Program-made: the position numbers and the translations under genes | The notes under the pieces: generated by a model | The model's database searches: none | Told to the model about the DNA's origin: nothing | Seen by the model: only the letters and a program-made list of their open reading frames with translations | Source: Setoptus koraiensis | Lineage: Eukaryota > Animalia > Arthropoda | Length of the DNA: 64,000 nucleotides | Reading direction: 5' to 3' | Assembly (NCBI GenBank): GCA_048013815.1 | Contig: CM106585.1 | Coordinates: 16,988,001-17,052,000 of the forward strand | Shown: positions 9,104 through 54,787 of the stretch, in pieces | How positions within the stretch are numbered: position 1 is the stretch's first letter | How the letters are laid out: each line of letters starts with the position of its first letter

Positions 9104-12100
9104 TCAGCCTTTTTGGGCCGAGACGGTGTTCTGAACGCAACAACTCCGAGCAACGGATTCGAAGAGCCTAAAATAAATAGATATGACGATAACAGATGGG
9201 AGAAATAATAGTTAATATGAATGAAAATTAGCTCGTGACTGTGTAAAGTGCGTACTCGCTCATGAATCTTCTTCTCTACTTACTTTTCTATCTCTGGGGC
9301 ACACCGCACAAACTCGTGATTCCAAAACTTGAAGATGGGATTCTTTATAAGTTCAATAAAAGTTACTAGCAGGCCCCATGGGTGTGGCCTCATGATAATT
9401 AGTCGTTCAACCAAAACTCGAGTTATTTGTTCTTGAATCTGATTCATATTCGCTTCGGCGAACAAGTATAGCAATGCAGAGCTGAAGTAGTGGGTATGCG
9501 AGTTGGGGTATCTTAGTTGATTGGCGATGGCATTCAAAAGAAGATATCTTCCCTCAGTGTCCAAAGTTATAGCGAGATGGTGGAAAATGTCTATGTGGGC
9601 TGTGTTGGCGATACTAGACATTGTAATCGGTCTGGGAGCGATAGCGTTTATAGCTGACTGGCCAACGTATAAAACGACTGCGTTCAGCAGTGGAACGTTG
9701 AGCGATTCATTGGATGATGCCGAATCAGCCACATTAACAAGATACTGTGGTTTTGCCCTGAGATAGAAAGCCAATATGTTAGGGAAACCATGAGGTGTCC
9801 TAGTTCGTAGGTAAATATCGAGCTCATCTTTGAATGTTATCTGATTGAATATGTTAAGTTGAATCGAGCTTGTTTTGGGTGGTTGTGACATTTCAGGCAA
9901 CTGTTCCATCTTCAGATTTGGTGTGAACGGGTCGGGAAGTCGCATTTTTCGCGGGAAAGCACTCAGTACCAAGTTCCGCATTTGTATTGCATTACATGGT
10001 ATGACATCACATAGACTGTAGCAATATTCGCAGAGGAATTCCGGAAAGTCATGTAATAGAACCAAGAATACCTTGAGAGTTCCTTTATAGAGCAAATCAA
10101 CAGATGGTGGTAGTTCGACGTTGCGTAGGAAAGGCGCTTCAAATTTCACCAAATCTATGAGGAGTTGAGCGTAAAGTGCCCATCCTCTGGTGCGATTGTT
10201 CGGGAAGCCATTCAAACATTTTTCGGCGAATATTCGATGTGCCAGAAAATCTAACCAAGCAAAAGCGAATGATGGTACCTTGCTGGGTCTTAGAGTCCGC
10301 AACGTTTTGCAAAATTGGTTCAATACCTGGAATTGAATGTTTTCAGTAAGCGCATCTAAAGTGGGGTTTAATTGATTGAAATTGAACGAAGCTTGAGTTG
10401 GTATCCCTAGAGAAGAAGGTGTAAGTGTAAGCTCTATGAATAGCAATATCAGGATGCGGTAGTAAGCTAGATGCTGAAATTCCGCTTGGCGTGACTCTTG
10501 GTCTCTTATCGCGACCGAAGCTATGATGGATAGTATCTTGGAGAGCAGATGTATTTTTGCAGTTGGTCCAGGTGAACCGCTTGATGGGCTGGAAGAACCA
10601 GAATTCTTGATCAACAAGACAATCAGATGTGTGAAGGCATCCAAAGTGCCATAACACTTGTTTCTGAGGTCAAGAGAATTAAAACCATTCTGAGTTTGAT
10701 TAGCAAATAAGCGATAGCAGGATTCGACGCACATCTCGGTCGAGAGACGAAAGAATCTTGTTATGAGGTCATCAGTCTTGAGTATACCATGTGCATTCAT
10801 TTGTTGAACGAAAACAGGAAACATTTTGGTTGCATGAGGCGAGGTTTGATAAATTCCAATCCATTCACGCAATAATCGTTCTGTCTTTTCAATTAAACCT
10901 GGTGGATCACCATCAGCAGTCTCGCGCTGGAGTGCAATATTGAGGCTAGAATTTCCCAGTTGATTCTGAGGACTGGCATTTGACAGTTCAGTGAAAGCAT
11001 TAGAAGACTGCAGCACCGTATTGTTCTGAGATACGTAACTGGACGGTGTATGCCTACTACTCGATTGAAGTGTTTCCAGGCAGCTTTGAATTTCCAACAA
11101 AAGACCCGGACTAGCAACAGATTTGAGCCTTGAAAGCAATTCAACTGTCTTCGGTAAGCTTGACTCAGAGAACGAACCACCGAATCTGTGAATAAATCGT
11201 ATTACAACAGAAGGATTCATGGATTGTTCGGTCACTCTGACGAGTTCTTCATCGAAAGTTGCAGAATTTGTCAAGTTATTTTGTACAAGATGGTCCAGGA
11301 ATATCTCTGGTCCAGTAGACTTTTTCAGGTCGTGAATGTTGCTTATTAATTTGCTCCAAGCGTGACGAGTTATGTGTCTCGTTGTCGGTACAAATCCAAA
11401 GGTTTCGGCCAGTGCTTTCAGGAGAAGCATATGTAGCTCGCGACCTCGGCAGATTGTATTGTAATCTAGAGTAGTGGTGTAATCGAAAACCAATTCATAC
11501 ATAGAATCCAGTATTTTTGAAATAAGTAATTTATAAGTTCTGTCTAGTGGATTACTTCGCATAACACCGAGCAATTGTATTATTTGAGCTGTGTTACTTG
11601 CTAAAGTTGGGGCTGGTAGAGATTGTACGAGTTGTTGCAATTGAGGAACAAGTTCGCTCAGAAGTTCCTCCAAGAAGCTCATGCTGGTATCAGTGTTTGC
11701 GACACTCGGTGTAGTGGCGGTTTTAGGTTGGTCTCCTAGTAATTGTGAGAAAGCTGGGAGTCTTTCGGGCTGAGGAGCAAATTGGTTCGGAGTCATGACT
11801 CTTGATGAGAACAGTTGATTCACCAGGCTGTTTGCTGTGGTAGCGTTTAACGGACTTCCACTCCGAACATTGTTAGAGGGCGCGTTCCCTAATAGAATAT
11901 TTGACGTAGATGATGCGCTACTTACAGTAACATCTTTGAAAGGTGAGTTAGTGTTCAGGCTGGGCATAGGTTGATCTATGACTGCGTTCTTTGGTTTTTT
12001 GAAACCGGAAATATTTTGACCTAATTCCTCGTACATACGCAACTGATCTTGAAGTATGGGTCCAGTCTTCAGCCTTATTGGCTCTGGTATAACCTTAGTA

Positions 12101-13852
12101 TGATAGGCCAAAACCTCTTGATCGCAATAATGACGGCCCTCGGCTTTAGCATTGCGCCGAAGTTCATATTCATTCTGGAGAAGTTTGTCAAGTTCAGAAA
12201 CCGCTTTTTCTACAGCAGTTTTGATGATGAATGCGCGTGCAAGATCTAGGTTATCTTTGGCAATGACTGTTGCCGCATGATCTGACTGCTCGATTGGGAT
12301 GCATGCGCTGGCTCTGCTGAAAGCCATTTTTATGTTTGCAGATAGAGAGGTTTCGAGATGATCAGTGTCTCTGCAAGAAATCATCGCCATGTATGATACG
12401 AGGTGCCTGATTAGATAGTGTGCAGCTATACCCATACGGTTTTCTTCAGGGTCCAATGCAAAGTCTTTCTTGACAATCTGTTCTGCTGTTGATAAGCATA
12501 TTTTAAGAGATCTTTCAAGTACAGCTGGCAGCCATTCTGAGATAGCTAGCTCTATGGCAGGTCTTACAGCAGACCGCAAACCAGGTTGCAGGTTGAAAAT
12601 AGTCAAGCTAGGGTGTATTGTGATTAATGAATGAAGACTACTAGTATTAGTCACATCCAACTCACTGTAATTGAACTTACTGACCCAAGTCACAGGTGCT
12701 CGCTCGACTGTACAGGGTAGCACCGTGCCAAGCGGTCCTATGACCGAGCTAGTGACAGGTTGTGAGGCCATTGACGTCAGTGGTGGCGTTGTTAGTGGAG
12801 ACAAAGAGGAACCGAATTCATTTTGTCGCATCATGATTGAGTTGATTCCAGGGGTTATATGCTGTTGAGAGGCGGGAACTTGTGGAAGTGATGAAGCTTT
12901 GAATGCATGTTGTTGTTGGATTGTTTGCATTGTCTGCTGTGTAGATTGTTGTGTCTGTTGCTGTTTTCCACCCAATTGACATTCAATTCGTGAGTAATAC
13001 TTCTCATCATTCAAGATATTGCTCTGGCCGACTAACCTATTTAAATCCATGTTGAGGTTATTGAATAAAACCTCAACTTGGAACTCTAAATTTAGTTTCA
13101 GATTCGGCTGCTGTCTTAATTCGACCAATGCTTTTAGTAGTCCTAGAACAAATGGGTTGGTAGGCTTAAAAATCTTTGATTTTTGAGTAGTCCTCAGTAT
13201 CTCGGCCAGAAACGGGACAACGTATAACAACTCTTGTGTGCCCTTATGGTATGCCTCAACAAGCAAACCTTTCAAGTCAAGATCGACATGAAGGATGGGT
13301 TTATTACGGGCAAGAGTGAGAAGACCTAACCATTGTCCCAGGTTCTTAAGTAAAGTTCGGTCGCTAATATTGTCAACCTTCTTATCTATTCTTAAGAGGA
13401 GCTTGATGTTGCGGTAGGTTTCCCTCGTTATAACTTCTATCAATTTTGGTATCTTCAGCTCGTACAGGAAAATCGCGTACAAGGGCTGAAAATTTTGTTC
13501 CAGAGCGGCTCTTTTGGTCGAGAAATATTGAGCTATCCATCCATAATAAGTATCGTCGGTTCCGAAGAGCTCTTTGAACTCTTCGGCTTTCTGTTTTAGA
13601 TTCATCAATGATAAATTGTTGATAATGAAGAAGACTTTGTCTTGGACATACTCAGGAGGTGCGGGATAATTTGCAGTGCTGCCAGCAGCTAGCAGGTTGT
13701 CTATATTAGCATTATTAGCGATCGAGGGTCTGGTCGCAACGGGTGCAGGGGGCCCTCCAGTAACAACGCGTCGTTGTTGAGCCTGTTGATGAGTTTGGAG
13801 TTGTTGTAGAGGTTGTTGCTGCTGCAGAGGCTGCTGAAGTTGCTGCTGCTGT

Positions 13853-13884
<32 letters not shown>

Positions 13885-15972
13885 TTGCTGCTGCTGTTGT
13901 TGTTGTTGCTGTTGTTGTTGTTGTTGTTGCTGTTGTTGTTGTTGCTGCTGCTGTTGTTGATGCTGCTGTTGTTGTTGTTGCTGCTGCTGTTGTAGTTGTT
14001 GCTGCTGTAGTTGTTGTTGCTGCAGTTGTTGTTGTTGCAGTTGTTGCTGTTGCTGAAGTAGCTGTTGCTGAAGTTGTTGTTGCTGGGGCTGTTGCTGGGG
14101 CTGCTGAGGCTGCTGTTGCTGAGGCTGAGGCTGCTGTTGTTGTTGGGGCTGCTGAGATATAACTTGATTCTGTATTTGCTGTTGTAAGACTTGCTGTGCG
14201 GATGGCTGTTTGACACCAATCTGATCCGGTCGAGAGAAATATTTTTCATCACTGATCATATTTGCTACTACGCCTGGAGGAGGTTGCCTTGGGGCTCTCT
14301 GCAACAGAATGGAGGAGTTACCAACCAAAGTGAAAACCTCTTTCTGCACGTTTTGAGAAATTTCAGGTAGGTTATGGTGGGAATTAGTTGAAAGGACTCG
14401 TTGCTGTAAAAATGTAAGCATCACAGCTAGAGTTTCTGCGGGTAAGCTTGGACCCCCCATCGCTATCGATCCGACATCATTCTCTTTATTTGATCCCCCT
14501 AGTAAAGATAGATAGCGCCTGTTTAGAAATGACGCGATAGCCCTAATAAAGTTTTCTCCATTCTCACTGAACTTATCCATCAGCCATTTATCCAGTTTAA
14601 GATATTCTCTTCTTGATGCTAGACAAGCTAAATCTATAACGAAGGGGTAGCATGTGCCATCGAGCAATCTGAATAAGGTTTTGATATCTTGCGCTACATC
14701 CAAAATTCGTGATAGCCGTTGTTGCTGCTCTTCAGGTGATGATTTGATATAATGATCACAAAGTGCATGAAGGAGTGCTTGCTGTGACCACGACAACGGA
14801 GTGCTTGGCTTTTGTTGATTTGGAGCAATACTAGAGGATTCACACTGTAAGTTACTATTCCAGATACTATGCAGTATAATAGCCGCATTAGGATGAGATG
14901 CATTAAGAAATGAAGGTATGGCCATACTGAGTATTTCAGACTTAGCGGCTGATGTTTGACCAGAGACACCTAACAAACCTAAAACAACAATATCGGGGCA
15001 ACTTTGAACAGGCCATCTAAATATCTCCAGGACCCGACCGTAGCAAATATTATTGGATTGTAGATTCGGTAGATTGCCTGGTATAGTAAAATCAATGAGA
15101 ATCTGATACAGCCGCTGGAACTTCCAATTCTTCAATCCTGGCAGAGAGTCGAAATCTGGATGGCATTTTAGCAAGTCATAATATTGAACTTGTTGACCGA
15201 TATTGGGTGTGCCTGCTTGTTGCACTGAATTGGAGAGTTGAGGTTGGGTTAATAATTTAGCAATCAAATTATGTTCGATACAGTTGGCAATGAAGTTGAA
15301 TTGAAAATCGTGATTGTGTTGCCAAATTTTGCTGAAGAAGGCACTCCCAATTATGTAAGGTCCAAGCTTATGTGACGAGGCTAGATTCATGAAAAATTGC
15401 CAGAAATGTTGAAAGGCGGTTGATGGCGATGATGATATGTGCTTGCTAGCAGGTATTGTATAAGAGGTATTCCTGAAAATTCTATCACTTATAAAATCCT
15501 CATCATCAAAGGCATGAAGTAGTTCATGAATTGGCGATGACAAATGTTCGCGGCAGATATCTGCAAACAAATCAATTTCCTCACTCCTATTGGATGTATC
15601 TATACTGGACGTTACTGATGATTGGCCGTGATTGTTACTTGATGGCGATGTCGCCTGTTGGTCATTATCTTGCTGTAGATGAAGTAATGAGGACATCGAT
15701 CCACTACTTGACATTCCGCTGTTATTGGTATGTAAGGGGGAGTTTGATTTTTGTGGTATCTCGCACAATGCACACAATATTTTGCAGGCCAACTTTGGAG
15801 TAAAATCAAATTGTCGAAGTATTTCGACATTGAGGTGGTTATTGCCAACATTTTCGTTGACTACCAATGCCGCTATCTGCGTCTCCGTTAGCGACAAATG
15901 GTTCGAGTTTGGATCAATGGTGGTCATAGTTGTATGGTCCCCAATATGATGATCCTCATATTTCAACCACAT
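9104..15972 (-). CDS. CNOT1: CCR4-NOT scaffold subunit 1, lacking the TTP-binding domain
   Basis: Exons 15972-9284 and 9167-9104 (phase-2 intron; joined ...APEIEK|LFESVARSCC). Motifs DLACLASRREYLKLDKW, CAF1-binding MIF4G (KVFFIINNLS), DUF3819, and the NOT1 C-terminal domain (RPHPWGLLVTFIELIKNP). Start may be the later MTTIDP codon. Confidence 0.96.
13780..14185 (-). repeat. CAA/CAG polyglutamine tract in CNOT1
   Basis: Gln-rich block of ~130 codons, including 40 uninterrupted Gln codons at 13840-13959. Confidence 0.97.
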
Positions 15973-16670
15973 GAACTAATAGAGTTTGTATTTTGTATTA
16001 TTAATGGCTACCAATAATAATAATAATGTCTGTGATAATCTCGGGATAGTGATTGATTATAAAATAATACAGATTTTGTGTGTGTATATATCTTCTATTG
16101 TATATAATTATGTGTGATTATAATAATAATAATAATAATAATAATACATATGCTACCAACAAAAAATAGATAATAATAATATGCGTTGTAATTACACGAC
16201 AGTGTCGTAAATGGATGTAATAGCCCTAGATAATTACATATATATATAATTAGAATGTATCAAGTGGCTGGAGCTCTCTTGTGGTTATACGCGAGTGATG
16301 TTATAAGAGCACGACAGCAGAGAGAAATACAAATGTAATCAAAGGTCTGAAAAATAATAGAACGCGAACCACCAATCGGTGCACCGATAGAAGAAAGGGA
16401 GAAACGGCGAACGAGAGGGGAATTTTGTCAATTCAGGGTGAACAAAAACTTTTGTATGTTTCACCCGATAAAGAGCATGTGATATTGAGGATCAAAATAA
16501 AGTGTAAGTCTGTCGCTAAAATCGCAAATCTGTGCAAAAAAATCTACTCCAATGTGCACGCATTCGCTCGTAACTCCGGCGGTTTATTCGAATTTTTCAA
16601 GTTTTTCCCTGCTGATTCAGTTAGAGTTTGCAACAATGTATACCAAAGTTATCTCGTGATCAGTATGCGC

Positions 16671-16743
16671 GGCCTTGTAGTATAATGGACATTACGCCTG
16701 ACTACGAATCAGGAGGTTCCAGGTTCGACCCCTGGCAAGGTCG
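16671..16743 (+). tRNA. tRNA-Arg-ACG: tRNA-Arg (anticodon ACG)
   Basis: Cloverleaf: acceptor GGCCTTG/CAAGGTC, anticodon stem CCTGA/TCAGG with loop CT-ACG-AA, T-arm CCAGG-TTCGACC-CCTGG, D-loop AATGG. No intron. Confidence 0.95.
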
Positions 16744-16751
16744 ACGGCTAC

Positions 16752-16756
16752 TTTTT
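16752..16756 (+). terminator. RNA polymerase III terminator (T5)
   Basis: TTTTT 9 nt downstream of the tRNA 3' end. Confidence 0.8.
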
Positions 16757-18039
16757 GCCGACTTATATCTAGAAGTTCTTTTTCATTTTCATTCATTCAT
16801 CTTATGGCTCACTTCATCTTTCTTTCCACTAACAATTGTACTTTTAATTCTATCTAATATTATATGGTATTTTTACAACTTGTTCGAAAAATTGGTAATT
16901 TTGACCGCGGCTATTCTATCACTACTATATCATCGCCCCACACTCAGTAGTATAGCGTCCGCTAGCTAAAGTCAGCTACTCACTTCCATAAGCTCCAATG
17001 CCCAGCCAACTAGCAAACAGAAACCTTTTTAGCGCGCAATCTCGCCTATCTCAAAACTAAAGTGGCGCTGCCTAGATAGATGCACATAGTTGCGGGGAGT
17101 GCGTGAACTAGAGCACACAAGCTAGATTTTACATGGAAAAAAAGAATGAAAGTATGCTCATACGCAACATCAAAGCTTGCCCACCGAAGGAAGAAGTGAT
17201 CCAGTGCGCAAGATTGTAACTTATGGCCAGGCTAGCTAACGGATTGATGAGCAAGCAGCACAAGTCTATAGCATGGAGACCCGTATCAGTCTTATCAACA
17301 TCGAGCTCCCTAAATCGAATGTTGGAGCGAATGCAGCATACATCCAGAGAGCAACCGTGTATATGTAATAGTTTGGATATTCTCTGTAGCTCGGCACTGT
17401 ATAAAATCTGAGGATGCACACAAAAATACACAAGCACATAGACACACAAGCACACAGGTCGAAACTGCGACGATGGTGCGACTTGATGATTCGCAAATCC
17501 AACTAAATTGTTGTACGTTGCGTCACAAGTGCATCAAGCTATGATTGCTGTGTTACGTCAGTACAAGCTGTGCCAATGCGCACCACTTGTCGTGCCATGT
17601 GCAATCATTATGCATATAGTCGTAGTCACACTAAAGCCATTGGAATGTGTCTAGATGGTTGGCACAAATAATATAATTGGCACACTTTGTACCAGTGAGC
17701 AGTGTCAGAATGGCGAACTGCACTATTCTCTGTTACGCTAAAAGTCTACGAGAGAAAGAAACATGATGGTCACACTCACTAAAACTCGCTCAACCACTAA
17801 CGCGCTTGTGTACGTTACATCTAGTTCGCTGAGTGCTTGTGTGAGCAACGAAATGTATGCCCACGGCTGCATTCATAACGCTATCATGCTTGCCTTCTTT
17901 ACCATCAACCATTCCAGTTTCTTCTCCTTCTCTTCTAGTGCTTGTGAGATTATCAGGAGCCTTTATATTATTGGGTGCCTGTGTACAATTGAAGCGATCA
18001 TTCGCATATATTTATACAAGATGCAATTTAATTCCTAAT

Positions 18040-18435: not shown

Positions 18436-21400
18436 ATGGAAGAGAGAATATCCAAGGAATTCTTACCTGTATTGGATAAACTCTACAATGCTGAGCCAGC
18501 TGGTGGCCCATTCAGGAAACCTGTCGATCCTGAATTGTACGAGTGCTACGACTATTATCTCAAAATAAAGCACCCAATAGATCTGTCTACCATCAGGGAG
18601 AAGCTCAACAATCGCAAATATGACGATGCCTGGAGACTTATCGCAGATATTAATCTCATGTTCAACAACGCGTGGCTGTTCAACAAACGACAAACCCCCG
18701 TTTACGAATACACTACCAAACTTAGTAAATTGTGGCAACAAGAACTTTCACCCGTTATGCAACGTCTTGGCTACTGCTGCTCAACACTCCACAGATTCGG
18801 ACCACAATTATTATTTTGTCATGGTACAACAACAGACCGTTACTGTCAAATTGCTGTTTCAGCTCGATACAAGTGCTATAATGATCAATATTCATATTGT
18901 ATACCTTGTTTTTCAAAAATTGAATCTAATTCAGTACAAATTCAGGATTTTTCTTCAGAGACTCCTCGAGGGGAACTTCCGTCACAACCGATAGATAAAG
19001 ATAAATTTGTCGATTGTACTAATGACCAGTGGCAATATGAAAGCTTTGTGAAGTGTGTTAGTTGCTCAAGACGAGTACATCAAGTTTGCAGCCTTTATCC
19101 AGCATCTGACGAAGAGATAGAAAATTGTATTCAGCATGCTGATTTGGAGCAGCAACAAAAAGATCAGTGCCAAGTACCGGAACAATTTAGATACTTGTTA
19201 GACCCAGATGTAGTGAACGAGAAACTTATAAATCTTAAAAACAGGAGGCAATCATGTAATGGTGCTGTGTCCTCCAAGAAAGCACATAACATTAATAAGA
19301 ATCAACAAAATCACGAGCAGAAATTGTTCGCCGAAAAAAATCCCTCGCGAAAATCAATCACCCAATACAAAAAAGAAGAAGGAATTAAGGAAAAAGAGTC
19401 TCATCAATTAACAAGCTTTATCAACTCTCTTGTTAATCCAAACTCAAATGAAGCCCAAGTTACTTCATCTTCACTTGACGACGAGCTGTTGGCTTTTGCC
19501 CGCGACGCGGCCGATAAACACCTTACTATTTCTGCCCCGACATCACCAGCTGCTCCTCATAGTTCTGGAGACTCAAGTATAAGTTTCAGCTCATCCGATG
19601 TCATTTCAACTACAAGCTGCGATTTCCTCAAGAGAATAACGGAAAAGGCTGAACCCAGTCTTACAAATACAAGACGTGATAGATTTTTGTGCAATCTCTG
19701 CTGCAATCAACAAACTTATGGTCGCGAGAATAGGCACCGCAAATGGAGTGCTCGCAGAATACAACAAAGCAGGATGTCTAGATATATAGAAGTTAAAGTG
19801 AACGAGTTCATTAAAAGCAGCGCCCCATCTGCTGGACCTATAACAATTCGAGTTCTTGCTGCATACAATGATAGGGTCGAGGTTAAACCTCAGATGCGAA
19901 ATTATGTTCAGCATTGTGCTGCAACTGACAAGCATCCTTTTTCAAAAGACTATCCAGAAGAATTCAAATACACAAATCGTGCCATATTTGCCTGGCAAGA
20001 AATAGATGGTGTGGACGTATGTGTTTTCGGCATGCATGTTCAAGAGTATGGCGTTGATTGTCCTGAACCCAACAAGCAAGTTATTTATCTGTCTTATTTA
20101 GATTCTGTGCATTTCTTCAGGCCCAAGGAGTATCGGACTGCAGTTTACCATCAAATACTTCTGTCATATTTTCGCTATGTCAAGAAACTAGGTTTCTTAC
20201 GGGCATTCATATGGGTGTGTCCTTCAAGGAAAGGAGATGACTATATTTTTTACCGCCACCCAACGGAACAAAAGATGCCAACTCTCAAAAGGCTTTCTGA
20301 TTGGTATGTCGATTTACTCGATAAAGGTATTATAGCCGGTGTAATCGAGCACCATCAAAACATATATCAATATGCGAACTCTCAAAATTGGAAATCCATA
20401 CTCAGCATGCCTTACCTTAGTGGTGACTACTGGCCAGGCGAATTCGAAAGACTTCTTAAGATTAAAGTAGAATCTCAGAGAGAATATGATGAATTCAAAT
20501 CAGCCCAAGATCGTACAACGAATGATTTAGACTTCGATTCCGAACTCCCATTGGATCTGAGTATAAATGCAAGTCATACTAGTCCCGAGTATTACGAGAG
20601 TGATGACAGCTCTAGTAAGAATTCATTCAGTCATGGTTTTAAAAACAATCGACGAAAGCGGAGGAAATCGAACACCTTATCAGGATATTTGAATAAAAAA
20701 AGGTATAGGATGTCGAGTATGTATCAAGAAACATCTTCCCAGAAGGATCATTCAGTTTCAGAGGCTTCGGATAGAAGCCGTGTATTAGTTGATCCAGAGG
20801 TAGAGTTTTCTCGTAGTTTAGAGAGATCACTCAAAAGGCAAAAAGAGGGATTCATAGTCGCTCATTTGAACGAATGTGATTGTTCCTCTTACTTTGAGCA
20901 GAAGCGTCGCGATGCTGAGCCCATGATTAAATGCGATCTAATGAAAGGCAGAGAGCCATTTCTGCAAACTGCCAGATTAAAGAATTATGAGTTTTCTACT
21001 TTGAGGCGTGCTAAATTTTCTAGCCTCGCCATGGTAAAACATCTTAGTCTGACATCTAAACTGACCCCACTGTGCAGCGTTTGTTATTCTTCAGACTGTC
21101 ATTCTAGCATCCACTACGCTTGCCCGACTTGCGAAGATTTCTACCTCTGTTCTTCATGTCATTTGAATACTCATCACGACCACAAATTAGAATTGACATC
21201 TCCTACTTTACTTCCGGACATTGATGACGATCATTTACAATGCTCAACCACTTCACATAAATCATCTACATCCTCCTCCTCCTCATCATCATCTACAGCT
21301 ATATCAACAAGTGTAACCTCTAAGTCATCATCTCTGTTAACATCCACATCGACACTCAAAAACAACGCAACTATAGAGAATCTCCATCACAGTACCAGGA

Positions 21401-21861
21401 GAGCCACATCATCTTTATCACATCAAGCCTTATTGCCCATACCTTCTCATCAGAATCAGGAGAAGCATAGAGCTGAAGACGAAGAAAACAATAAGAGGGT
21501 TTTATCAGACAGGCATACTATCTCAAGAGCACTAACATCTTCGCCACCGCCATCAACTATGAGCAATCCGTCGTACGAATCTTTAAATTTAGAGATCATT
21601 GGAAGTCTTATCACCCGAGCTCAAATTTTTCATGATGTTGATTTTGAAAAGATGAAAAACGAGTCTAAAGCATTGATAACCCATTACTGGTATTGTAAAG
21701 CTAAAGATAATTGCCAGATGTGCAGGTTTGTTATACTAAGTTGCAGCTTTATGAGTTTGACTCTCACCGGCCACAAACCCCCCTCAAATAATCACAACAA
21801 TAATAACAATAATAGTGGCAGTGGTGGCAACTCAAACAAATCCTCAGGCATAATGAACTAA
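18436..21861 (+). CDS. CBP: CBP/p300-family (KAT3) acetyltransferase core: bromo-RING-PHD-HAT-ZZ-degenerate TAZ2
   Basis: Intronless 1141 aa ORF. Bromodomain (PFRKPVDP..FNNAWLFN), GYCC linker, HAT motifs YLSYLDSVHFFRP, TAVYHQIL, IWVCP..GDDYIF, DWY, PYLSGDYWP, EFSTLRRAKFSS, and ZZ finger. Confidence 0.93.
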   Translation: MEERISKEFLPVLDKLYNAEPAGGPFRKPVDPELYECYDYYLKIKHPIDLSTIREKLNNRKYDDAWRLIADINLMFNNAWLFNKRQTPVYEYTTKLSKLWQQELSPVMQRLGYCCSTLHRFGPQLLFCHGTTTDRYCQIAVSARYKCYNDQYSYCIPCFSKIESNSVQIQDFSSETPRGELPSQPIDKDKFVDCTNDQWQYESFVKCVSCSRRVHQVCSLYPASDEEIENCIQHADLEQQQKDQCQVPEQFRYLLDPDVVNEKLINLKNRRQSCNGAVSSKKAHNINKNQQNHEQKLFAEKNPSRKSITQYKKEEGIKEKESHQLTSFINSLVNPNSNEAQVTSSSLDDELLAFARDAADKHLTISAPTSPAAPHSSGDSSISFSSSDVISTTSCDFLKRITEKAEPSLTNTRRDRFLCNLCCNQQTYGRENRHRKWSARRIQQSRMSRYIEVKVNEFIKSSAPSAGPITIRVLAAYNDRVEVKPQMRNYVQHCAATDKHPFSKDYPEEFKYTNRAIFAWQEIDGVDVCVFGMHVQEYGVDCPEPNKQVIYLSYLDSVHFFRPKEYRTAVYHQILLSYFRYVKKLGFLRAFIWVCPSRKGDDYIFYRHPTEQKMPTLKRLSDWYVDLLDKGIIAGVIEHHQNIYQYANSQNWKSILSMPYLSGDYWPGEFERLLKIKVESQREYDEFKSAQDRTTNDLDFDSELPLDLSINASHTSPEYYESDDSSSKNSFSHGFKNNRRKRRKSNTLSGYLNKKRYRMSSMYQETSSQKDHSVSEASDRSRVLVDPEVEFSRSLERSLKRQKEGFIVAHLNECDCSSYFEQKRRDAEPMIKCDLMKGREPFLQTARLKNYEFSTLRRAKFSSLAMVKHLSLTSKLTPLCSVCYSSDCHSSIHYACPTCEDFYLCSSCHLNTHHDHKLELTSPTLLPDIDDDHLQCSTTSHKSSTSSSSSSSSTAISTSVTSKSSSLLTSTSTLKNNATIENLHHSTRRATSSLSHQALLPIPSHQNQEKHRAEDEENNKRVLSDRHTISRALTSSPPPSTMSNPSYESLNLEIIGSLITRAQIFHDVDFEKMKNESKALITHYWYCKAKDNCQMCRFVILSCSFMSLTLTGHKPPSNNHNNNNNNSGSGGNSNKSSGIMN

Positions 21862-25393: not shown

Positions 25394-25792
25394 TGACTAT
25401 TTATTTTTATATTTCGCTGTAAACGGTCATTTATGAAGAATGATCCGATTGGTTCGCGATCATCATTTAATAAATTAAGTAGATAATAACTTGGATAGTT
25501 GCGAAACTCATATCTGATCGCAGCCAACTTTCGGAAAGTGACCGTTCGTTTATCGAGGAGACCTGGATGATCGCTACACCAACATTTCATAGTGTGCATA
25601 TTCGATTGTTTGATCAGTGAGTCGATCTCACACCATGGTGCGCCGTCTCCGTACCTCTCTCTCTCCATGGCCCCAGCAGGAGCCCCTTATGTCGTTCCTG
25701 GATATGCCCAAGCCTCTTGAGCACTTGAACCTGGACTAACACATCCCGTGGATAACAGCTACCGCTGGAAGGAACATGTTAGAATAGCGAGG

Positions 25793-38759: not shown

Positions 38760-39400
38760 GCTCTGGCTGCCATTGTGCCGTTTATGCCAGGCCACCCTCT
38801 CGCACTGTTCGCCACTTTGTTGCCTGCGTGCGTTTGTCCGTCCGCCAATGCGCTTGCCGCTCTGTCCCGCTCTCCCGATCGCTCGCTGTCCCGCTCTCCC
38901 GATCGCTCGATGCTCGTTAACTGCCAGCGGCGCTGCCCGTGATTGCTTGCTGTTGGGTCGGGTCTGGCCGAGTTGCGCACCCGCTCTGTGGCCTAACTGC
39001 CGCCCAACTGCGGCCAAACTGCCGCCGAGCTGCCACCGCCGCCGAACTGTCGCCAAACTGCCGGCCCGACTGGTCGCCCGAGCCGCTCGGGCCGCTCGAC
39101 TGCGCGCCCATCAATACTGCCGAACGCCGCTGAACGCTGCCGAACGCCACCGAACACAGCGGTCCGTGTGTGCGGCTATTCGGAATTAGAAAAATTCGAC
39201 AGAGAAGCTCTCCGTCGAATTGTGCACGCCAGTTCTGCAGTTTACGCGCCCAGGCTCGCCCAACTGCCTTCGCGTAACTGCCAAGCCGCCCCCCCCTCGA
39301 CAAATGGCTGCCACCGGCCGACTGGCCATGCAACACAACGCAGTCTGTCGGACAGACCCGACAAATCTGACAAGACTCACACATTGCATAAGCAAGCAGC
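38760..39400. promoter_or_regulatory. GC/CpG-rich island with short direct repeats and same-strand YAACTGCC motifs
   Basis: Visibly GC-rich versus flanks. 24-bp duplication CTGTCCCGCTCTCCCGATCGCTCG near 38862-38909; perfect YAACTGCC at 38918, 38994, 39261, 39275. Regulatory role is inference. Confidence 0.4.
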
Positions 39401-39840
39401 TTGTTATATACAGTGGAGTGTGAGCATATCAATTGTTATACAACAATAACAACCAATAATAACAATCTGATTGTCTGCTCGCTGTCACATGAACAAGCTC
39501 GAGAAATAGGGGGCGTCGTTTGTGTGTTGTGTTGTGTCGGATCGTATCGCTCTCGCACTGCGGATATCGGTTGTTGTTCAACTCTCAACTGTGCTGGCCC
39601 CAATGCACAATGACCCATGATGAACGATTCCAATAATTCATCCTAACACCGTGATAGCGCCGCCTTTTTTGCCGCTCAACGGCGCCGCTCCATCTATTTG
39701 CCGTGTCCAATCTCTCCGTTAGTCTGGCCAATGCGCCAGTGCAGCGCCAAAAGCAGGTATAATGGGGCCAGATCCGCACCGAAAAGAGCCAGGCGTATCC
39801 GTCGATGCGCCGAGCCTCAATTGTTTTGGTTCTGTGGCCC

Positions 39841-39900
39841 CCTCTCGCGTACATCTCTCTCGCGTACATCTCTCTAGCATGCATCCCTCTCGCATGTATC
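39841..39900. repeat. ~15-bp degenerate tandem repeat CTCTCGCGTACATCT, 4 copies
   Basis: Read directly: two near-identical and two diverged units. Confidence 0.8.
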
Positions 39901-45189: not shown

Positions 45190-46131
45190 TTGTCGATGGC
45201 CACTCAAATGAGCACCCAAGCATCAACCATTGCAGCATGTAGCATTGGTGCAACTGGTATCATGCAAAAATGTAATCAATTGCAACCTAATCTTATTTGT
45301 CCCATTGAGGCATCATTCGATCCATACGATGAGGATAGCTGGTTCTTTGGCTCTATGGGTCGCAATGAAGCAACAGACCTTTTATTGACAGAGCCAGAAG
45401 GAGTTTTTATTGTAAGAGAAAGTACAACAAGTCTCGGTGATCTCGTGTTGAGCGTTAAAGAAAGCGCCGACAAAGTTAGTCATTACATCATCAATAAGAT
45501 TACTGTTAAAAAAGATTCCTCAAAAACGCATCAAATCAGATTTAAAATCGGTGATCAATCCTTCCTAGATGTGCCATCATTATTAACATTTTATAAAAAA
45601 CATTTTCTAGATACAACCTCATTGAAAAAACCCGCTAAAGTCAGAGAGAAAAAATCACAAATGTTCATCTGTGATTATCTTGAGACATTATCACAAAATT
45701 CAAATACTACCACCTCGTCTACGTCAGATGACCAACTGTCACAAAGCCAACAATCTAACAAGAGCCATACAATTAGTGTTTCACCATTAGATATGAGTGG
45801 CCAACTAATTACAACTTCCAATCAGGATACCTTCAATCACCCACCGACTCACTTTGGCATTCATGATAACTTCGATCATGCAATCAGTCATCACTCCACC
45901 ACTTTAAAGAGACACCACAATTTACCTCGTCTTGCACGAGTTATTAGATCAAAGATTCCTAACGCCTACGATAAGACCGCTTTAACCTTGAAATTAGGCG
46001 ACATAATCAAAGTAACTGAGACTCAAGTTAGTGGCCAATGGGAGGGAGAGCTCAACGGTAAAAAAGGCCATTTCCCCTTCACACATGTTGAATTTATTGA
46101 AGGACCTGAAGTACAGCCCGATGTCTCCTGA
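45190..46131 (+). CDS. Crk: Crk adaptor with SH2 and C-terminal SH3 only (N-terminal SH3 absent)
   Basis: Intronless 313 aa. Crk-type SH2 (WFFGSMGR..GVFIVRESTT..LSVKE..KVSHYIIN..FLDTT) and the Crk-specific SH3C (IPNAYDKTAL.L..GDIIKV..GQWEGELNGKKGHFPFTHV). Confidence 0.93.
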   Translation: MSMATQMSTQASTIAACSIGATGIMQKCNQLQPNLICPIEASFDPYDEDSWFFGSMGRNEATDLLLTEPEGVFIVRESTTSLGDLVLSVKESADKVSHYIINKITVKKDSSKTHQIRFKIGDQSFLDVPSLLTFYKKHFLDTTSLKKPAKVREKKSQMFICDYLETLSQNSNTTTSSTSDDQLSQSQQSNKSHTISVSPLDMSGQLITTSNQDTFNHPPTHFGIHDNFDHAISHHSTTLKRHHNLPRLARVIRSKIPNAYDKTALTLKLGDIIKVTETQVSGQWEGELNGKKGHFPFTHVEFIEGPEVQPDVS

Positions 46132-47639: not shown

Positions 47640-48843
47640 GACGGAATATGAACTATGCTTCGAGTTGATAGCGATATTTCCTCGGTTCCACTATTAGTTA
47701 TATTTCACTATTTGTTTCGGATATTCTGGGGTTACTTTGGACTCAAGTTATTTGGCGAAGCTGATAAAATGACTGAGGCAACGAGAACAAAATTGCGCAT
47801 CATCAAAGTTGCGACAATTCATTCAACTTGCACTAGTGGCGGTTCAATCATCCATCATGAAGTTGGAACATTGTCTAAACAATTGCAGTGGTTCAGTTCA
47901 ATAAATGTCCGCGAGAGACGCTCTCCATCGTCTAACAATGCTCTAGTCGATGGACGTTTCAATGCTCATGTGTCCCACTACTAGAAAAAGTGTATCAATC
48001 ATGAAACAAGTGCAAAGTTGAAACGTTGTTCGGAACACCCTACAACTTCGGTCTGTAAATTTAAGTGCGGCACAAACGCCTCTAGCGAACTTTTATCAAA
48101 CGAAAAGTAACTGCGTCGAAAATTGTCAACTGGGCATACGCAATGACGAAAAGAACAACAATGGCAAGTGGATGTAGAGCAAGTGGAACAATTTACCTGC
48201 CAACTTTCAGTCTTACCTTTGTAAGAAGAACTAGAAAGTCACGATTGGTGGGATGATTCGTTGAATTACTCCCAGGTGACTAGTCGTAATCGGATGTACT
48301 TGAATGCGAGATCTAGTACGGAAAGAAACCTCGCCAAGACGGAATGTCGTAATGCTCGAATTAAAATCACCAGTGACACATTTCTTCTCATGGTACAAAT
48401 TATCTCATAGAAAAGTCACACCTCTTAACTAACATTGAGCTCGACTTTATTTGTGCGATAAAAGTGCTGATCACAGAACAAACTAATTTTCAATTATTGA
48501 GTTGAGCATCCACGAGTTATTTTATTTTTCTCCAACATTTTGTTGACGATTGAATACTATATTAAGCGAAGAACGTCTATCTATTTAACACTCTCAACAT
48601 GAAGTTATAATGTCCACCCTAGCTCGGTCTCTGAAAGCTCCAGTAGTAGACATTATCAACAATCAGTTTAGACTTCGATAATTTTCAAAGTGATATTCGT
48701 CCATGAATATTCACACAGAAAATAGTCGCTCTAAATTTCTCAAGTCGAGATACCTGATCCATAAAAAATCTGTCATATTATATCGTTTGTCTCACATGGT
48801 CTGGACATACGTTTTGATCCAATAATTTAAATGTTTTTTTACA

Positions 48844-50981
48844 TTATCGTAAAATGTTCTTCGTGGTTGGTAAAAGACGCTGCAGATCACCAATAAGTCC
48901 GCCTTTAAATATCCAAGGTTCTTGCTCATCGGATGTATATGTTTCTTTGTATCCCTTGGCGTATGCGACGGGGTCATAGAAGTCATCTAATGAGGCATTT
49001 CTACAGCCTAAACACGAGTGGCAAGAAACGAAATAGTGAACTAATAAGATATCATGCTTCGGTATGGAATGAGGAAAAAAGAAGAGAACTGCTGATACTT
49101 ACCTACACATTTGACATAGTTACTCAATAAAGTTGTTATGTCACGTACCTCTAAAAGATAAGGATATATGTCATGCAGCAAAGACTTATTTTGACATTCT
49201 GATGTTAGTCTATAGAGTAACTCGGCGATTGATGAGCTCATATTCTCGAAGTTTTTCGCGTGATCGAACCACATTTCAGGTGTTCTCGTTTCACTATGCT
49301 TCCCTGAATACTCTTCATCAGACACTGATGCAGTTTTATTTGACGGTTCGCTACTTTTTGAAATATCAGTTTCTTTACCAGAGTCGTCGCCAGCGTTGCT
49401 AGATAAGAGGTCACAATTGGCTCTTAACCATTGAAACTCTCTTAAAAGTTGCAAGCCTCTAGGTCCATGTTCGAATGGCAAATAAAACAAGTCAACCAAC
49501 AAGGCGAGATGGTTAGAGCTAAGTTGCTTGTGCTTTGAAGAATCCTCGGAAATTCTTTGGGAGTCAATGCACAATGGACAATCTTCGCTGGTCTGTGTCT
49601 GATCTCTGAAATTCGGATTGTTGATATCCATAGGCTCACTATCTTTCTCTTTGGATGAATCATACGGTGGTTCTGAGTGCATTCCTTCATGATCAAAATT
49701 AGATTGACTCAATGAGGTTTTACGGATATCAAACAAACTCTCATCTGATGAATCAATTCTTATATGATCCGAGGAACATGCCGACTCTTCCTCAACCATT
49801 GAGTCAGCTACCATAGGCTCCTCCTTCTGGAATAGATTCATGGCAGCAGATAGAGCGACGTTTCCGGATTGACGACATTCGCCAAGTCTTTCGCCAGCAG
49901 GAGACTCTTTATTCTCGGCAAACATTGGCAACCAATCTTTGATAGCCTCTTCGAGCGCTAGCTTGGGATCATAGACACACGACATCTGATTTTCATTGGA
50001 CTCAGGATTGTCGTTCACATATTGCATACTAGATTGATCTTGTATTTTAAGATTAAGGCCTAACAAATCACAGAAATTCTCAGTCTTGGGCTTAGCATCC
50101 TCCGAGCATTTACTCCATCGTGCAAATGTATGTATAGGTATGTAATTAGCCTCGTATTCACAATTGGGGTTGGTGAGTACACCTCTTAGTTTAGGTATTA
50201 GTTTGGTAGATCGGCCGCAGTAAGGTCCAAGAAACATTCTTTTCTTGTCGTAATCGTTTGCGTGTAAATTCTCCCAAATCAACGGAGGTCTGCGAATGAC
50301 TTGTGTCAATATCATGATAGAGTCCTCAGTGATAACTTTTGAAATAACACGTGAACCACTCCACATAATATCAATGTTTGGTTTAAGTTCTCTACCTATA
50401 GTATTGAGATATTCAGATTCCGGTACATTTGGTACTGCTCTAGACTCGCAATACTCTGTCGGGCAGAACAAGAATTTCGGCTCGCCGAGGTGTTCATATA
50501 TGAGGTTAGTGATGGAAACTTGAGCTGTGGCGTATGTCTTGAATACTTCTTTATCATCGTTATTGTTGGTGGGTTCTATGTCGTCAAATAGCAAAGCAAA
50601 TGAGGTACAACCTAGCTCAACTAATTGATCGAATTTTTTTATTAGACAGGTAACGTCTTTCGAATTTGAATATACCATGTCTAATCCTGGTGCCAGTGAA
50701 TAGTAAAAGTCTATATTGTATTTACCCGCTTCTTCAATCAGTGATTTAAGATGGTCAGCCTCATCTTTGTTGTAAGGCTCACGCCAATTGGCACGATGTT
50801 TTAGATCATCCTTTGGGGCATACATAAAAGAATTCAATCCAAACGAATGCATCTTCTTAAAGAGGTCTTTCCTTTGTTCGCATGTCCACGGCTTACCATA
50901 AAAGCCCTCAACCACGCCACATAAAAATCTCGATTGACCCTCGCTACATGTGACGGATGTTGGCTTAATTTCCTCATCCAT
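48844..50981 (-). CDS. OGA: O-GlcNAcase (GH84), ~680 aa, no pseudo-HAT domain
   Basis: Exons 50981-49103 and 49007-48844 (phase 1). GVVEGFYGKPW, YAPKDD, catalytic FALLFDDI, PTEYC, HANDYD. Exon 2 encodes the last stalk helix EPWIFKGGLIGDLQRLLP, then TAA. Confidence 0.93.
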
Positions 50982-52140
50982 ATTGGTGGCAGTTGTTGTT
51001 GTGCCTATGTCTCATACCAGTGAAATAAACTGTCTCTATAACTGTGTCACTTATATAAGCTGATATTGACAATTCAGCCAAATGAGTTCCTATGTGAAAT
51101 AACAGAAATAGATAACTGTAATACTAGTAATTGTAAATGACAATTGCTTGATGAAATCTATCTCACAGCGGGCTATTCCATTGTTCTATGATCTTATCGA
51201 TGATAAGTCCTGAATAGAAACCGGGATATCTTGTGCATTTGGATGTCGAATTCTGTTGTGCTTCCATTGTGCCAACAACACAGTATTTGAATTATGTGCA
51301 AATGCACAATTTTGCCACAAAATCAATCTCATGTACTTTTCAGTGAATGATTCTTAATTTGATATTTCGAATGACTTGAGACTTTTCGAAAAAAACCAAG
51401 TTACGTTCATCTTGTCGTTCTCTTTTGATCTGGCCTGTAAATATATTTTAGGATAATGTATCGAGAGTGATGTTCATATAAGTTTAAATTGATTCAACCG
51501 ACGACACTGGAGTATTTTGATAAGCTAGCACACAAGGTGTGGAATGCTGTGCAAAGCTCACGAGAAAAGCTTTTATTTGTCATCTGTGCTTGTTGTGCTT
51601 ACTGTTTGCGCTTTTCCTAATGTCCGATGATTATTTTCTTTTTTTGATTAGGCTAGGAGCGCGCAGAGCGTTTCGGATGCAGACTCAAATAAAGAGTGTT
51701 ACGTTAAATGTTTATTTACTTCAATTCAGTTTCGCATGGATTCAAGCAGATGAGTGTACGTGCAATTCGACGCGAGGTGGCGCATCGGCCGTTCATATTA
51801 TTGTACGCGATCCTGCAGATAAGCACTCCCCGAGATCACTGGTTTGCACTGCAAAAGATGGACCAAGTGAGCCGCCCTGGCGGAATAAAAAGAAACAATC
51901 ATCGAACGTTGAGAAAAGCGCACACAACACGGTTGTGAATGGTTATCAGACAACCGAAATCACAACCGAATTTAGCGCAAATTCTAGAAAGTGAGCACGC
52001 GCAATCATAAATGTTGCACGTATCAATTTCGGCCGCCATAAACCACTGTAACAAGTGTCACAATTAATACGCCAAACGATTCTCTATTACTGTAATAAAA
52101 ATAATAAATTTCATGTAAAACAAAATATCAATCAACTACA

Positions 52141-52539
52141 ATGGATAAAAGAGACGACCGTCCTTCTTATGAGCAAAGATCTCAGTTGGCAGATCTGTTG
52201 AAGAAGAGATTGGATGAAACTGGTTGGACACGTGACTTTGAGAGATCAATAAAAGATATTGTAACGGGCAAACTCGATGAAAATGGGAAAATAGATATAA
52301 ATAAAGTCATCCACGAGGTCATGCCGACAGCCATAGATAGCATCCCGAAAGATTTCAAAGAAGACTTCAGAATAAAGATGAGCTCAGTACATGCCAAGAA
52401 ATCAGAAGCCGCACTACCGCCACCACCACCTCCACCAAAACAACAACAACAACCATTAATGCAGAGGACTACCCACATGAACCCTTCAATTGTTAACCAA
52501 ACCATTCTCGAAAACGTGACCATGTGTATGTCGCCATAA
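52141..52539 (+). CDS. ENY2: ENY2/Sus1-like (SAGA DUB module / TREX-2 adaptor), divergent
   Basis: QLADLLKKRLDETGW...I..V..EVMP.A...IP..FKED resembles ENY2 RLKELLRAKLIECGW...LVAEITPKG..LVP..VKKEL. Extra Pro/Gln C-terminal tail. Confidence 0.7.
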   Translation: MDKRDDRPSYEQRSQLADLLKKRLDETGWTRDFERSIKDIVTGKLDENGKIDINKVIHEVMPTAIDSIPKDFKEDFRIKMSSVHAKKSEAALPPPPPPPKQQQQPLMQRTTHMNPSIVNQTILENVTMCMSP

Positions 52540-52815
52540 TTATTAATCGCCGTAAGCCCAAATTAAAGCAATCACCAATACAAACCAGTTCTACTTATAT
52601 CTCTACCGATATGAACTTTCGGTTTTCTCCTCCTCCTAAAATTCACTAATATTGCTACTTCGTGAATAATCTTTTAGTCTGTAACATTCCAATTAGAGAT
52701 TAGATTGATATTCATTGATGGTCAGAGAAAAACTAGGCCATAATCGCATCACATCCTTGACTGATACACTGTATGATCACATGTATTGAGTTCACATGTT
52801 GTCTATTTAATTATT

Positions 52816-54787
52816 CTATAATTGGTTCAATCTTATCTGAACTGGCGTAACAAAACCATCTGGTTTCCTTTCTAATTTTGTGGAAAAATTACAAAGACTA
52901 AACAAATAGGGGTGCCTGTATGTTGAGACGATAACAAAGTTTTGATTTACCATCAGTCTTCAAGCACAATGTCGCTACTTTACTTAAAGTAAAATTTTTT
53001 TGTACTCCATCGAGGAAGGGATTGTATTTCCTATCGTACCTCATGTCTTGAGCTTCCAAACTTGGACAAGTGTTTTGATAATCATCAATACTGAACCGTT
53101 TGATATGCTTTGCTCTCGGTTTTTCATCAAAATCTTCGTCATCTTGAGACACCATTCTCTTTTGATTGGCCGACTTCTTTAAGCTTAAATTTAATGGAAG
53201 TAGGTGACCTTCGGTTGAAAAAACGTAGTCGTCTAAGTCTACAAAAGTCTCGTTGGGCGCACTGAACAATAAGTATAGATACTTGAGAGTTTCCGCAAGG
53301 ACAAAAGATGCCATCCTATCGTCGTGTACACCAGTTCTGACATCTTTCAAGCCTGCGAAACCACAATCCACCTTCAAGTCTTTGAGATTTTCGAGGGCTT
53401 TCTTACCTATCTCTAGATAGTAATCTTCATTTGTTGCTTTATGCAGAAAGTAGGTCGACTCTAGAAATTCTGGCCTCATCTGATGATTTGCCCAGTAAAC
53501 TTGCAAGTCGGTTGTGAACGCCTCAGGTAAATAAGTGTGTTTCTTGATTACTTCATTGAACATAGAATGAGTTGATATTGCAGATCGTAGATCACCCTTC
53601 AATACTTGTAAACCTGGCCAAAAAGCAGACAGAGCGTCCATAAATCCTTTGGCTAACCTGCTCGGACGGTGCATTTGAACATCAACGAGGAAAGGCCCCC
53701 TACTTACGTATCGCATAACGCTGGCATAGTGACGGTTGAAACGCTTGAGAAAAACGTCATCGCCCAGCAATATGTAAGCTTTGAGCAAATATTCGTAATA
53801 ACTATCGGATCCAGCACCGACTCCAGATTCGCGGTGGATCCATTCTCCACTTTCTATATCCAATACTGTTCCTACCAAGTCGGTGCTTCTATGGCGATGT
53901 TCCCAAAGAGAATCCATAGCAAGTCTGGCTTTATCTTCATAAATCGGTTCACCTGTGAGACGACTTAAAGTAGCGAACTCTAATATAAGCGAGCCGGCAC
54001 AAGCGGTGCATGTCTTTTGCAATGATTTAAGCTCTCTTGTATTGATACCATGTCGGAGATTTACTCTCGGATGAGGTATACCAGTCTTGGTATCGAAAGC
54101 AGGAAGTAGCCTGTCGCCGAGATCTTTAGCTAGGTCTAGCAATTGGGAGCTGTACCAATCGAGGCTGTTATTGGTGGGGTTGTAAGGCACATTCTTGTTA
54201 TAATTTTTATCTTGTATGGACTTGGCTAACATGTGAGCGCTCAGTAAACCGCCCAACATCCTGATATTTGTCTCGAACACCGATACAACGATATCTATAT
54301 CAAAAGTGAGGTCCTGGGTAAGACGCTTGACGGCAGATTCGAATTCGTACAGTTCGCCCATTAGAACGAGAGTGTCAAGGCTATCGACTAGTGTTAATGA
54401 AAAATTACCAATTGAATCATCTATATCACTAGAATCTTCTATCTGTCTATACCTACCTTGACAAGATATGGGCAAAATCTCGTCAGCAGGGTAGGTATTG
54501 ATGTACGAATTGTAGGCATGAAAGAACATGGACTTCACTTCATCTCTCAATCGGAGCCTTTCAATTTGATCAAACGTCCTAACAGAATCTATTATAGTGG
54601 TCACCAAGACTAAAGATATAAATAGATAAATCAATAAATGCCTGGTATCTGTGAGATTGGAAATCCTCCGATTGCACATTGTCTGCTGAAGATCGGTATT
54701 GGATTGTGGTCCGTTGCGGAAAGATTCATCACAGTTGGTCAATCGTTTCTGGAATTCAGTATTGCTGTTGCACGTTGGTTCTTTCAT
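52816..54787 (-). CDS. EDEM3: ER degradation-enhancing alpha-mannosidase-like 3 (GH47), C-terminally short
   Basis: Main exon 54787-52951 plus probable exon 52871-52816 (phase 1); unspliced frame stops at 52898. PADE..P.SC.GR, FSLTLVDSLDTL, VSVFETNIR, EDEM3-type TCTACAG, DSYYEYLLK, RPEFLESTY, STEGH. Confidence 0.9.

Follow-up and report, generated by a model that had tools for sequence, protein, structure and literature searches.

Five genes within 46 kb of the Setoptus koraiensis genome, encoding orthologues of CNOT1, Crk, OGA and EDEM3 together with a CBP/p300-like protein, have lost whole partner-docking or regulatory domains from otherwise conserved proteins. They lie in a 64,000-nucleotide stretch of contig CM106585.1 (positions 16,988,001 to 17,052,000 of the forward strand), referred to here as the window, in which all positions below are counted from the first nucleotide. 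An earlier sequence-only reading of the window had proposed that six genes, the sixth being ENY2, each lack a module. All six were found where that reading had placed them, each as an open and conserved open-reading frame (ORF), and five of the six losses proved solid: the TTP-binding domain of CNOT1 (Pfam and a clean alignment gap), TAZ1, KIX, NCBD and most of TAZ2 in the CBP-like protein (Pfam, tblastn and PDB searches, with one zinc motif remaining), SH3N in Crk (PDB scores and alignment), the pseudo-HAT domain of OGA in this species (a splice-confirmed last exon and the transcript end), and the PA domain and KDEL signal of EDEM3 (Pfam, tree and protein terminus). For ENY2, the proposed loss of helix 1 stood only insofar as some 10 residues are missing at the N-terminus, a minor shortening that falls short of a lost module. 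The Pfam scan of the ORFs gave no match to PF16417 (the TTP-binding domain), zf-TAZ, KIX, NCBD or PA.

The window was analyzed by Pfam scanning, alignment searches against the PDB, multiple alignment, tblastn, homologue searches and Rfam, and by aligning contigs from sequencing runs to it; the homologue searches covered 5.8 billion and 1.8 billion proteins, many of them from eriophyoid-derived contigs. The ORF list and Pfam matches show closely spaced long ORFs of animal genes, most of them without introns, though introns do exist, one in OGA and several in an opsin-like gene. The closest named matches of the window proteins are from the eriophyoid mites Fragariocoptes setiger and Aceria tosichella, and the DNA of the window is also present in phyllosphere and air metagenomes; the genome is accordingly that of an eriophyoid (gall or rust) mite. 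Eriophyoid genomes are described in three papers as ~23–35 Mb in size, with massive intron and gene loss (PMC7738191, PMC11879100, bioRxiv 10.64898/2026.08.24.746826). Runs X6 and X8 were treated as RNA, as their cover is restricted to genes and X6 carries the exact OGA splice, while runs X2 and X3 behave as genomic DNA. DNA contigs from other runs reproduce the stretch that contains OGA, ENY2 and EDEM3.

Losses in CNOT1, the CBP/p300-like protein, Crk and EDEM3

The CNOT1 orthologue retains the features of a deadenylase scaffold, with Pfam matches to HEAT (amino acids (aa) 346–523), the CAF1-binding MIF4G domain (aa 769–991, E = 7.6e-72), the CNOT9-binding DUF3819 (aa 1130–1276, E = 3.8e-36) and the Not1 superfamily homology domain (aa 1874–2230, E = 2e-122). 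No Pfam match was obtained in this protein to PF16417 (CNOT1_TTP_bind), the metazoan TTP-binding HEAT domain that lies between HEAT and MIF4G. The same domain was found in none of the 24 closest homologues (63–71% identity) and in all 96 of the remaining CNOT1 matches, among them Tetranychus, Leptotrombidium, Dinothrombium, Oppia, ticks, insects and vertebrates. In the multiple alignment, the flanks align well and a clean gap spans the ~190-aa domain in the window protein and seven relatives. The spacer between the conserved motifs on either side of the gap is 181 aa in the window protein, compared to 55–63 aa in eriophyoid relatives and 340–391 aa in other animals, and its extra length is an imperfect CAG/CAA tandem array at 13814–14156. 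Because the relatives have the same gap and only the window spacer is expanded, the domain was lost in a common ancestor, and the polyglutamine tract is a later, species-specific expansion.

9280..15972 (-): CNOT1 orthologue, 2230 aa, single ORF (Pfam, homologue search, alignment)
13723..14268 (-): CNOT1 deletion site, flanked by the conserved motifs 'PPGV' and 'SIANxxNID'; 181 aa, mostly polyglutamine

Elsewhere in CNOT1, at aa ~1400–1870, Pfam NOT1_connector and ARM_Cnot1 were not detected at E ≤ 0.01 in the window protein. Both are recorded in about half of the eriophyoid-like relatives and in all outgroups, and this region of the window protein may be unusually divergent.

The CBP/p300-like protein begins at the bromodomain and carries, by Pfam, Bromo (aa 12–94), RING (RING_CBP-p300, aa 107–148) and HAT_KAT11 (aa 455–770), with a partial PHD match below the curated cut-off. 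The ZZ zinc finger and the HAT C-terminus align to p300/CBP in the PDB search (E = 7e-19), and the ZZ cysteines and histidine are invariant in the eriophyoid-like alignment. Also kept are the bromodomain Asn and the catalytic residues of HAT, Trp in 'IWVCP' and Tyr in 'DWY'. Drosophila nejire and the other metazoan CBP/p300 (KAT3) proteins have the same Bromo-RING-PHD-HAT-ZZ core with these catalytic residues; the window protein differs from them in having no TAZ1, KIX or NCBD, in lacking two thirds of TAZ2, and in core domains that score far lower (HAT 146 bits versus ~275 in other animals), so that the core, too, is evolving fast.

18436..21861 (+): CBP/p300-like gene, 1141 aa, single ORF beginning at the bromodomain (Pfam, PDB, tblastn, alignment)
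21073..21180 (+): ZZ zinc finger of the CBP-like protein, ~aa 880–915 (PDB alignment to p300/CBP)
21640..21753 (+): C-terminal HCCC zinc motif (H1083, C1087, C1093, C1096) followed by 'SCSFMS' (alignment)
16671..16743 (+): tRNA gene in the spacer that separates CNOT1 from the CBP-like gene, the two being divergently transcribed (Rfam, 61.8 bits)

TAZ1, KIX and NCBD gave no Pfam match in the CBP-like protein, and tblastn with seven full-length CBPs, all of which carry TAZ1, KIX, TAZ2 and NCBD, matched only Bromo-PHD and HAT-ZZ in the 64-kb window and in a 26-kb locus from a relative (L004), with no TAZ1, KIX or NCBD in either. A complete TAZ2, with its three HCCC sites, is likewise absent: the p300 TAZ2 match scores -0.9 bits, and neither the window protein nor its relatives have a Pfam zf-TAZ match. 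What remains is an H-x3-C-x5-C-x2-C motif followed by 'SCSFMS', invariant in seven eriophyoid-like CBP sequences including a fragment without the N-terminal part, and it corresponds to one of the three TAZ2 zinc sites, the sole TAZ2 remnant in this protein. The start of the protein is supported by conservation of its start codon. Six eriophyoid-like relatives of 911–1350 aa all start with M-[DE]-E-[KR]-I-[SC]-K at the bromodomain, the window ATG lies 14 codons after an in-frame stop, and in L004 the homologous ATG lies 6 codons after a stop, with no AG between the two. The tRNA gene in the spacer indicates that the region upstream of the CBP-like gene is ordinary intergenic space. Upstream exons were considered and rejected on the tblastn result, the conserved start codon with in-frame stops just before it, and this tRNA gene.

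In Crk, residues 41–152 align to the human CRK SH2 domain in the PDB search (79.6 bits) with the phosphotyrosine-binding arginine motif 'FIVRES' kept, and residues 211–309 align to the human linker and SH3C at 87.2 bits, the same SH3 domain scoring 8 bits against SH3N. The linker itself gave no PDB alignment to SH3N, the PxxPxK-binding effector domain. SH3N is absent from all seven eriophyoid-like Crk sequences aligned (the window, a 90%-identical relative, Fragariocoptes, Aceria and three further relatives) and is kept in Halotydeus, Panonychus, Leptotrombidium and Ixodes. SH2 and SH3C are separated by 39–52 aa in Aceria-like sequences, by 78 aa in Fragariocoptes and by 99 aa in the window, the last matching the length found in species that have SH3N. 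Of the known forms of this adaptor, CrkI is SH2-SH3N and both CrkII and CrkL are SH2-SH3N-SH3C. A predicted Nilaparvata isoform X2 (P0115) skips SH3N, indicating that the SH2-SH3C form exists elsewhere as a minor product, predicted in some insects. The eriophyoid protein shares SH2 and SH3C with this family but, throughout the clade, was found solely as SH2-SH3C, from a gene without SH3N sequence.

45190..46131 (+): Crk orthologue, 313 aa, with SH2 at ~aa 41–152 and SH3C at ~aa 244–304 (PDB and alignment); the first listed start codon is TTG, and the true start may be an internal ATG
45643..45918 (+): Crk linker, Ser/Thr/Gln-rich, at the place of SH3N in other animals

The EDEM3 orthologue consists of the GH47 domain only (E = 7.6e-112) and ends in 'PLFV'. 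Nearly all of its best named matches are PA-bearing EDEM3 proteins (53–62% identity), with a few records of the same group labelled 'like 2'; an identity as EDEM1 or EDEM2 was rejected for this reason. The PA domain (PF02225) is present neither in the window protein nor in its 30 closest homologues, Aceria among them, and is found in 82 of the 90 remaining EDEM3 matches from chelicerates and insects. A maximum-likelihood tree limited to EDEM3 sequences kept the 31 PA-less proteins together, separated from the rest by a branch with 100/100 support, the window sequence being sister to the other 30. A single origin therefore suffices for the loss of the PA domain. About 45 of the 90 other EDEM3 proteins end in xDEL, an ending that all 31 eriophyoid-like ones lack. 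RNA-like contigs from X6 and X8 are colinear with the genome over the EDEM3 stop codon.

52898..54787 (-): EDEM3 orthologue, 629 aa, GH47 only at aa 87–531 (Pfam, homologue search, tree)

An eriophyoid-like metagenome contig (L001) contains a ~5.6-kb tandem duplication with EDEM3 copies at 10001–11686 and 15619–17709, encoding 561 and 696 aa, both without a PA domain.

The ends of OGA and ENY2

The 646-aa OGA ORF has a strong GH84 match (Pfam, E = 4.5e-84), and its catalytic Asp-Asp ('FDD') and stalk align to the human parts in the PDB search. The stop codon falls ~8 residues past the 'RLLP' motif, contigs from X6 and X8 continue unspliced beyond it to about 48500, and the interval 47650–48445, between the 3′ end of OGA and the next gene, has neither RNA-like cover nor a minus-strand ORF longer than 79 aa. 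Taken together, the stop after the stalk, the unspliced transcript past the stop and the lack of downstream cover or a long ORF indicate that the OGA gene stops at the stalk and encodes no pseudo-HAT domain. OGA without this domain is known from the Trichoplax paralogue TaOGA53 and from a vertebrate short isoform (PMC12494797), which likewise consist of the GH84 core. Those short forms coexist with a long form, whereas the window gene itself stops after the stalk. A metagenome scan with OGA found no relatives, and the loci L001–L003, reached through EDEM3 and Crk relatives, carry other neighbours and not the OGA and ENY2 of those relatives.

49102..50981 (-): OGA exon 1, with the GH84 catalytic domain and the greater part of the stalk (Pfam, PDB)
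49007..49101 (-): last OGA intron, 95 nt, GT..AG (GTAAGT...TTTAG) (sequence and spliced X6 contig)
48844..49006 (-): last OGA exon, encoding the stalk end 'PWIFKGGLIGDLQRLLPTTKNILR' and the stop codon

In some DNA contigs from runs X2 and X3, position 48501 is joined to 48888, omitting 386 nt and inserting CATC; in that variant or relative, the junction would remove the last ~14 OGA codons and the 3′ untranslated region. Many other X2 and X3 contigs are 90–95% alike.

In ENY2, the Pfam EnY2 match covers profile positions 13–75 of 83 (E = 1.3e-10), and in alignments with yeast Sus1 and Drosophila e(y)2b its N-terminus comes out ~10 residues shorter. A transcript contig beginning near 52057 follows the genome colinearly, and an in-frame stop at 52105–52107 precedes the ATG, so that no coding exon is hidden upstream. 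With only a slight N-terminal truncation, ENY2 is thus the weakest case of the six.

52138..52536 (+): ENY2 orthologue, 133 aa, with a Pro/Gln-rich C-terminal tail (Pfam, alignment)

The length of the Pro/Gln-rich tail varies between runs at 52412–52455, where a 6-nt deletion and several loose ends were seen.

Origin of the losses and rival explanations

By alignment and domain content, the losses in CNOT1, CBP, Crk and EDEM3 are common to all of the 6 to 30 nearest relatives, whereas the domains are retained in outgroup mites, in ticks and in insects. Since these four losses are clade-wide and absent in outgroup mites, they are ancient in-frame eriophyoid deletions and not artefacts. Very probably, an eriophyoid ancestor lost entire accessory domains through in-frame deletions in single conserved hub genes. 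On this account it would have removed the TTP-binding HEAT domain from CNOT1; TAZ1, KIX, NCBD and two of the three TAZ2 zinc sites from CBP; SH3N from Crk; and the PA domain and endoplasmic reticulum (ER) retrieval signal from EDEM3, with the OGA pseudo-HAT also gone, at least in this species. What remains of these proteins is still under purifying selection, the deleted parts being those that dock specific partners or regulate the core. Judging from what is known of these families, the cores would still work as a deadenylase scaffold, an acetyltransferase with chromatin readers, a phosphotyrosine adaptor, an O-GlcNAc hydrolase and a mannosidase, while recruitment or regulation through the classical partners would be lost.

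The sequence-only reading had described the pattern as streamlining of the proteome at the level of domains, and had pointed to low-complexity sequence exactly where the folded domains of CNOT1 and Crk should be. The losses are indeed real, lineage-specific and ancient, but compaction is not supported, given that the CNOT1 spacer has grown to 181 aa from the 55–63 aa of relatives and the Crk linker has been re-lengthened. Low-complexity sequence is located at both places as described, but as a later, species-specific event and not as the mode of loss. Because the CNOT1 and Crk deletion sites were later re-expanded with repeats in this species, the observations suggest that relaxed constraint, more than DNA economy, drove the losses; the cause may lie in a simplified, miniaturized animal with a deletion-prone genome and not in selection for saving DNA. 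Speculatively, the losses in Crk and OGA could be linked to intron loss by way of recombination with cDNAs of exon-skipped isoforms, an idea prompted for Crk by the Nilaparvata isoform.

A gene-model or assembly artefact, with the domains lying in missed exons or another frame or lost by the collapse of repeats, is extremely improbable. Introns do occur in OGA and the opsin-like gene, and the CNOT1 gap coincides with a repeat array, which makes mis-assembly conceivable there. However, the flanks of each deletion are joined within a continuous ORF, and the same joins are found in independent assemblies of 6 to 30 related taxa. Moreover, neither N- nor C-terminal modules of CBP were detected in the window by tblastn, RNA-like contigs follow the genome colinearly over the ends of OGA, ENY2 and EDEM3, and DNA contigs of other runs reproduce that stretch, by which this explanation is largely refuted. 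It is also unlikely that the missing modules are supplied elsewhere, by full-length paralogues or split genes, with the window copies being subfunctionalized short paralogues. Such arrangements have precedents: in Trichoplax, OGA is encoded by two genes, one short and one long; isoforms with a short OGA or an SH3N-less Crk are known from vertebrates and insects (PMC12494797; Nilaparvata X2); and L001 has the tandem EDEM3 duplication. Nevertheless, both of the L001 copies are without the PA domain, and the searches of 5.8 billion and 1.8 billion proteins returned no close relative (at least 50% identity) with the missing domains. A scan of Joint Genome Institute (JGI) metagenomes for TAZ1 and KIX gave 80 loci, all non-eriophyoid, of which those bearing HAT are full-length CBPs ~34–47% identical to the window HAT over the main stretch; none of the 80 came from the sample holding the eriophyoid-like contigs, a weak negative since two exact peptide patterns were used.

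Ascertainment must also be considered, as domain loss of this kind might be ordinary for fast-evolving small-genome arthropods and the affected genes simply picked out by the sequence-only reading. No more than 5 or 6 of the roughly 20 genes had been flagged, the eriophyoid sequences sit on very long branches with low-scoring retained domains (as for HAT), so that more absences at the level of Pfam are expected, and the domain is likewise missing from a few non-eriophyoid EDEM3 and Crk entries, for the most part incomplete models or isoforms. On the other hand, the losses show up in alignment as real gaps instead of weakly matching domains, they have practically no counterpart among the 90–118 other animal matches per family, and five of them fall within 46 kb, which leaves this explanation with little probability. 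With the lost domain kept in 96 of 96 non-eriophyoid CNOT1 matches and in 82 of 90 for EDEM3, five losses among roughly 20 genes are far above background.

Several points weigh against ancestral deletion from single hub genes. Most of the 'eriophyoid' relatives are metagenome- or Sequence Read Archive (SRA)-derived ORFs placed by similarity alone, and the background loss rate for other arthropods was estimated from these five families only. The RNA status of X6 and X8 is judged solely from one spliced contig and from cover confined to genes, the checks of OGA and ENY2 extend to this species alone, and the 5′ end of the CBP-like gene is placed from sequence. ENY2 makes a weak case, being a 10-residue truncation of a poorly conserved N-terminus. 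Full-architecture paralogues or separate module genes, for instance a stand-alone TAZ1-KIX protein, may possibly lie elsewhere in the genome.

Protein shortening and domain loss, with accessory regions removed and catalytic cores kept, are familiar from microsporidia and other reduced eukaryotes. S. koraiensis differs from these in being a free-living plant-feeding bilaterian, and in having lost discrete whole domains of signalling and transcription hubs instead of undergoing general trimming. We infer that the pattern is genome-wide. Somewhat doubtful, although a real possibility, is the stronger claim that the only eriophyoid CBP/p300 is one without every classical transcription-factor-docking domain and the only Crk one without SH3N, within a genome-wide pruning of modules.

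Within its own clade, the closest published comparison is Aculops lycopersici, whose genome is likewise very small and intron-poor with massive gene loss (PMC7738191). For some (developmental) transcription factors of Aculops, Greenhalgh et al. 2020 briefly noted 'simplification by domain loss' (PMC7738191). CBP and Crk are unmentioned, and no general claim of domain pruning was found, in the searchable text of the eriophyoid genome papers (PMC7738191; PMC11879100; bioRxiv 10.64898/2026.08.24.746826), and Tis11, CrebB, C3G and mbc were not found in the supplements of PMC7738191 that were searched. Compared to the published streamlining, the losses are mapped here to the clade for four genes, and the re-expanded linkers argue against simple compaction.

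If these are the only copies, they would be separation-of-function versions, produced by natural evolution and tested by selection, of proteins for which engineered deletions are the usual tool of study: a CBP without transcription-factor docking sites, a Crk without SH3N in which SH3C is strongly conserved, a CNOT1 without its TTP site, an OGA without pseudo-HAT and an EDEM3 without PA or KDEL. The set would allow a direct test of which hub functions are independent of the lost module and which partners were lost with it, and it would extend eriophyoid reduction from fewer genes and introns to protein architecture. Coactivator recruitment through KIX, TAZ and NCBD, and Crk SH3N signalling to DOCK180 and C3G, would then be dispensable for building an arthropod, and the retained SH3C, HCCC motif and chromatin-reader core would have essential functions independent of the lost modules.

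Other features of the window

Two ORFs, at 58397–60238 (+) (613 aa) and 33843–34322 (+) (159 aa), have no Pfam match; the longer contains a 21-nt tandem repeat at 59610–59719 and has a weak match to an ORF of L001 (26% identity). A multi-exon rhodopsin-type G-protein-coupled receptor gene lies at 22964–25400 (-), where the 7tm_1 match is confined to the C-terminal part of a 463-aa ORF that is preceded by further transmembrane exons. A BAG6-like ORF at 5695–8529 contains a 15-nt unit repeated 19.7 times (91% matches) at 7078–7372 (+), encoding an in-frame pentapeptide repeat. The ~1.6 kb at 38400–40000 differ in composition from the rest of the window (~50% versus ~40% GC), with ORFs overlapping on both strands and a 24-nt direct repeat at 38862–38909.

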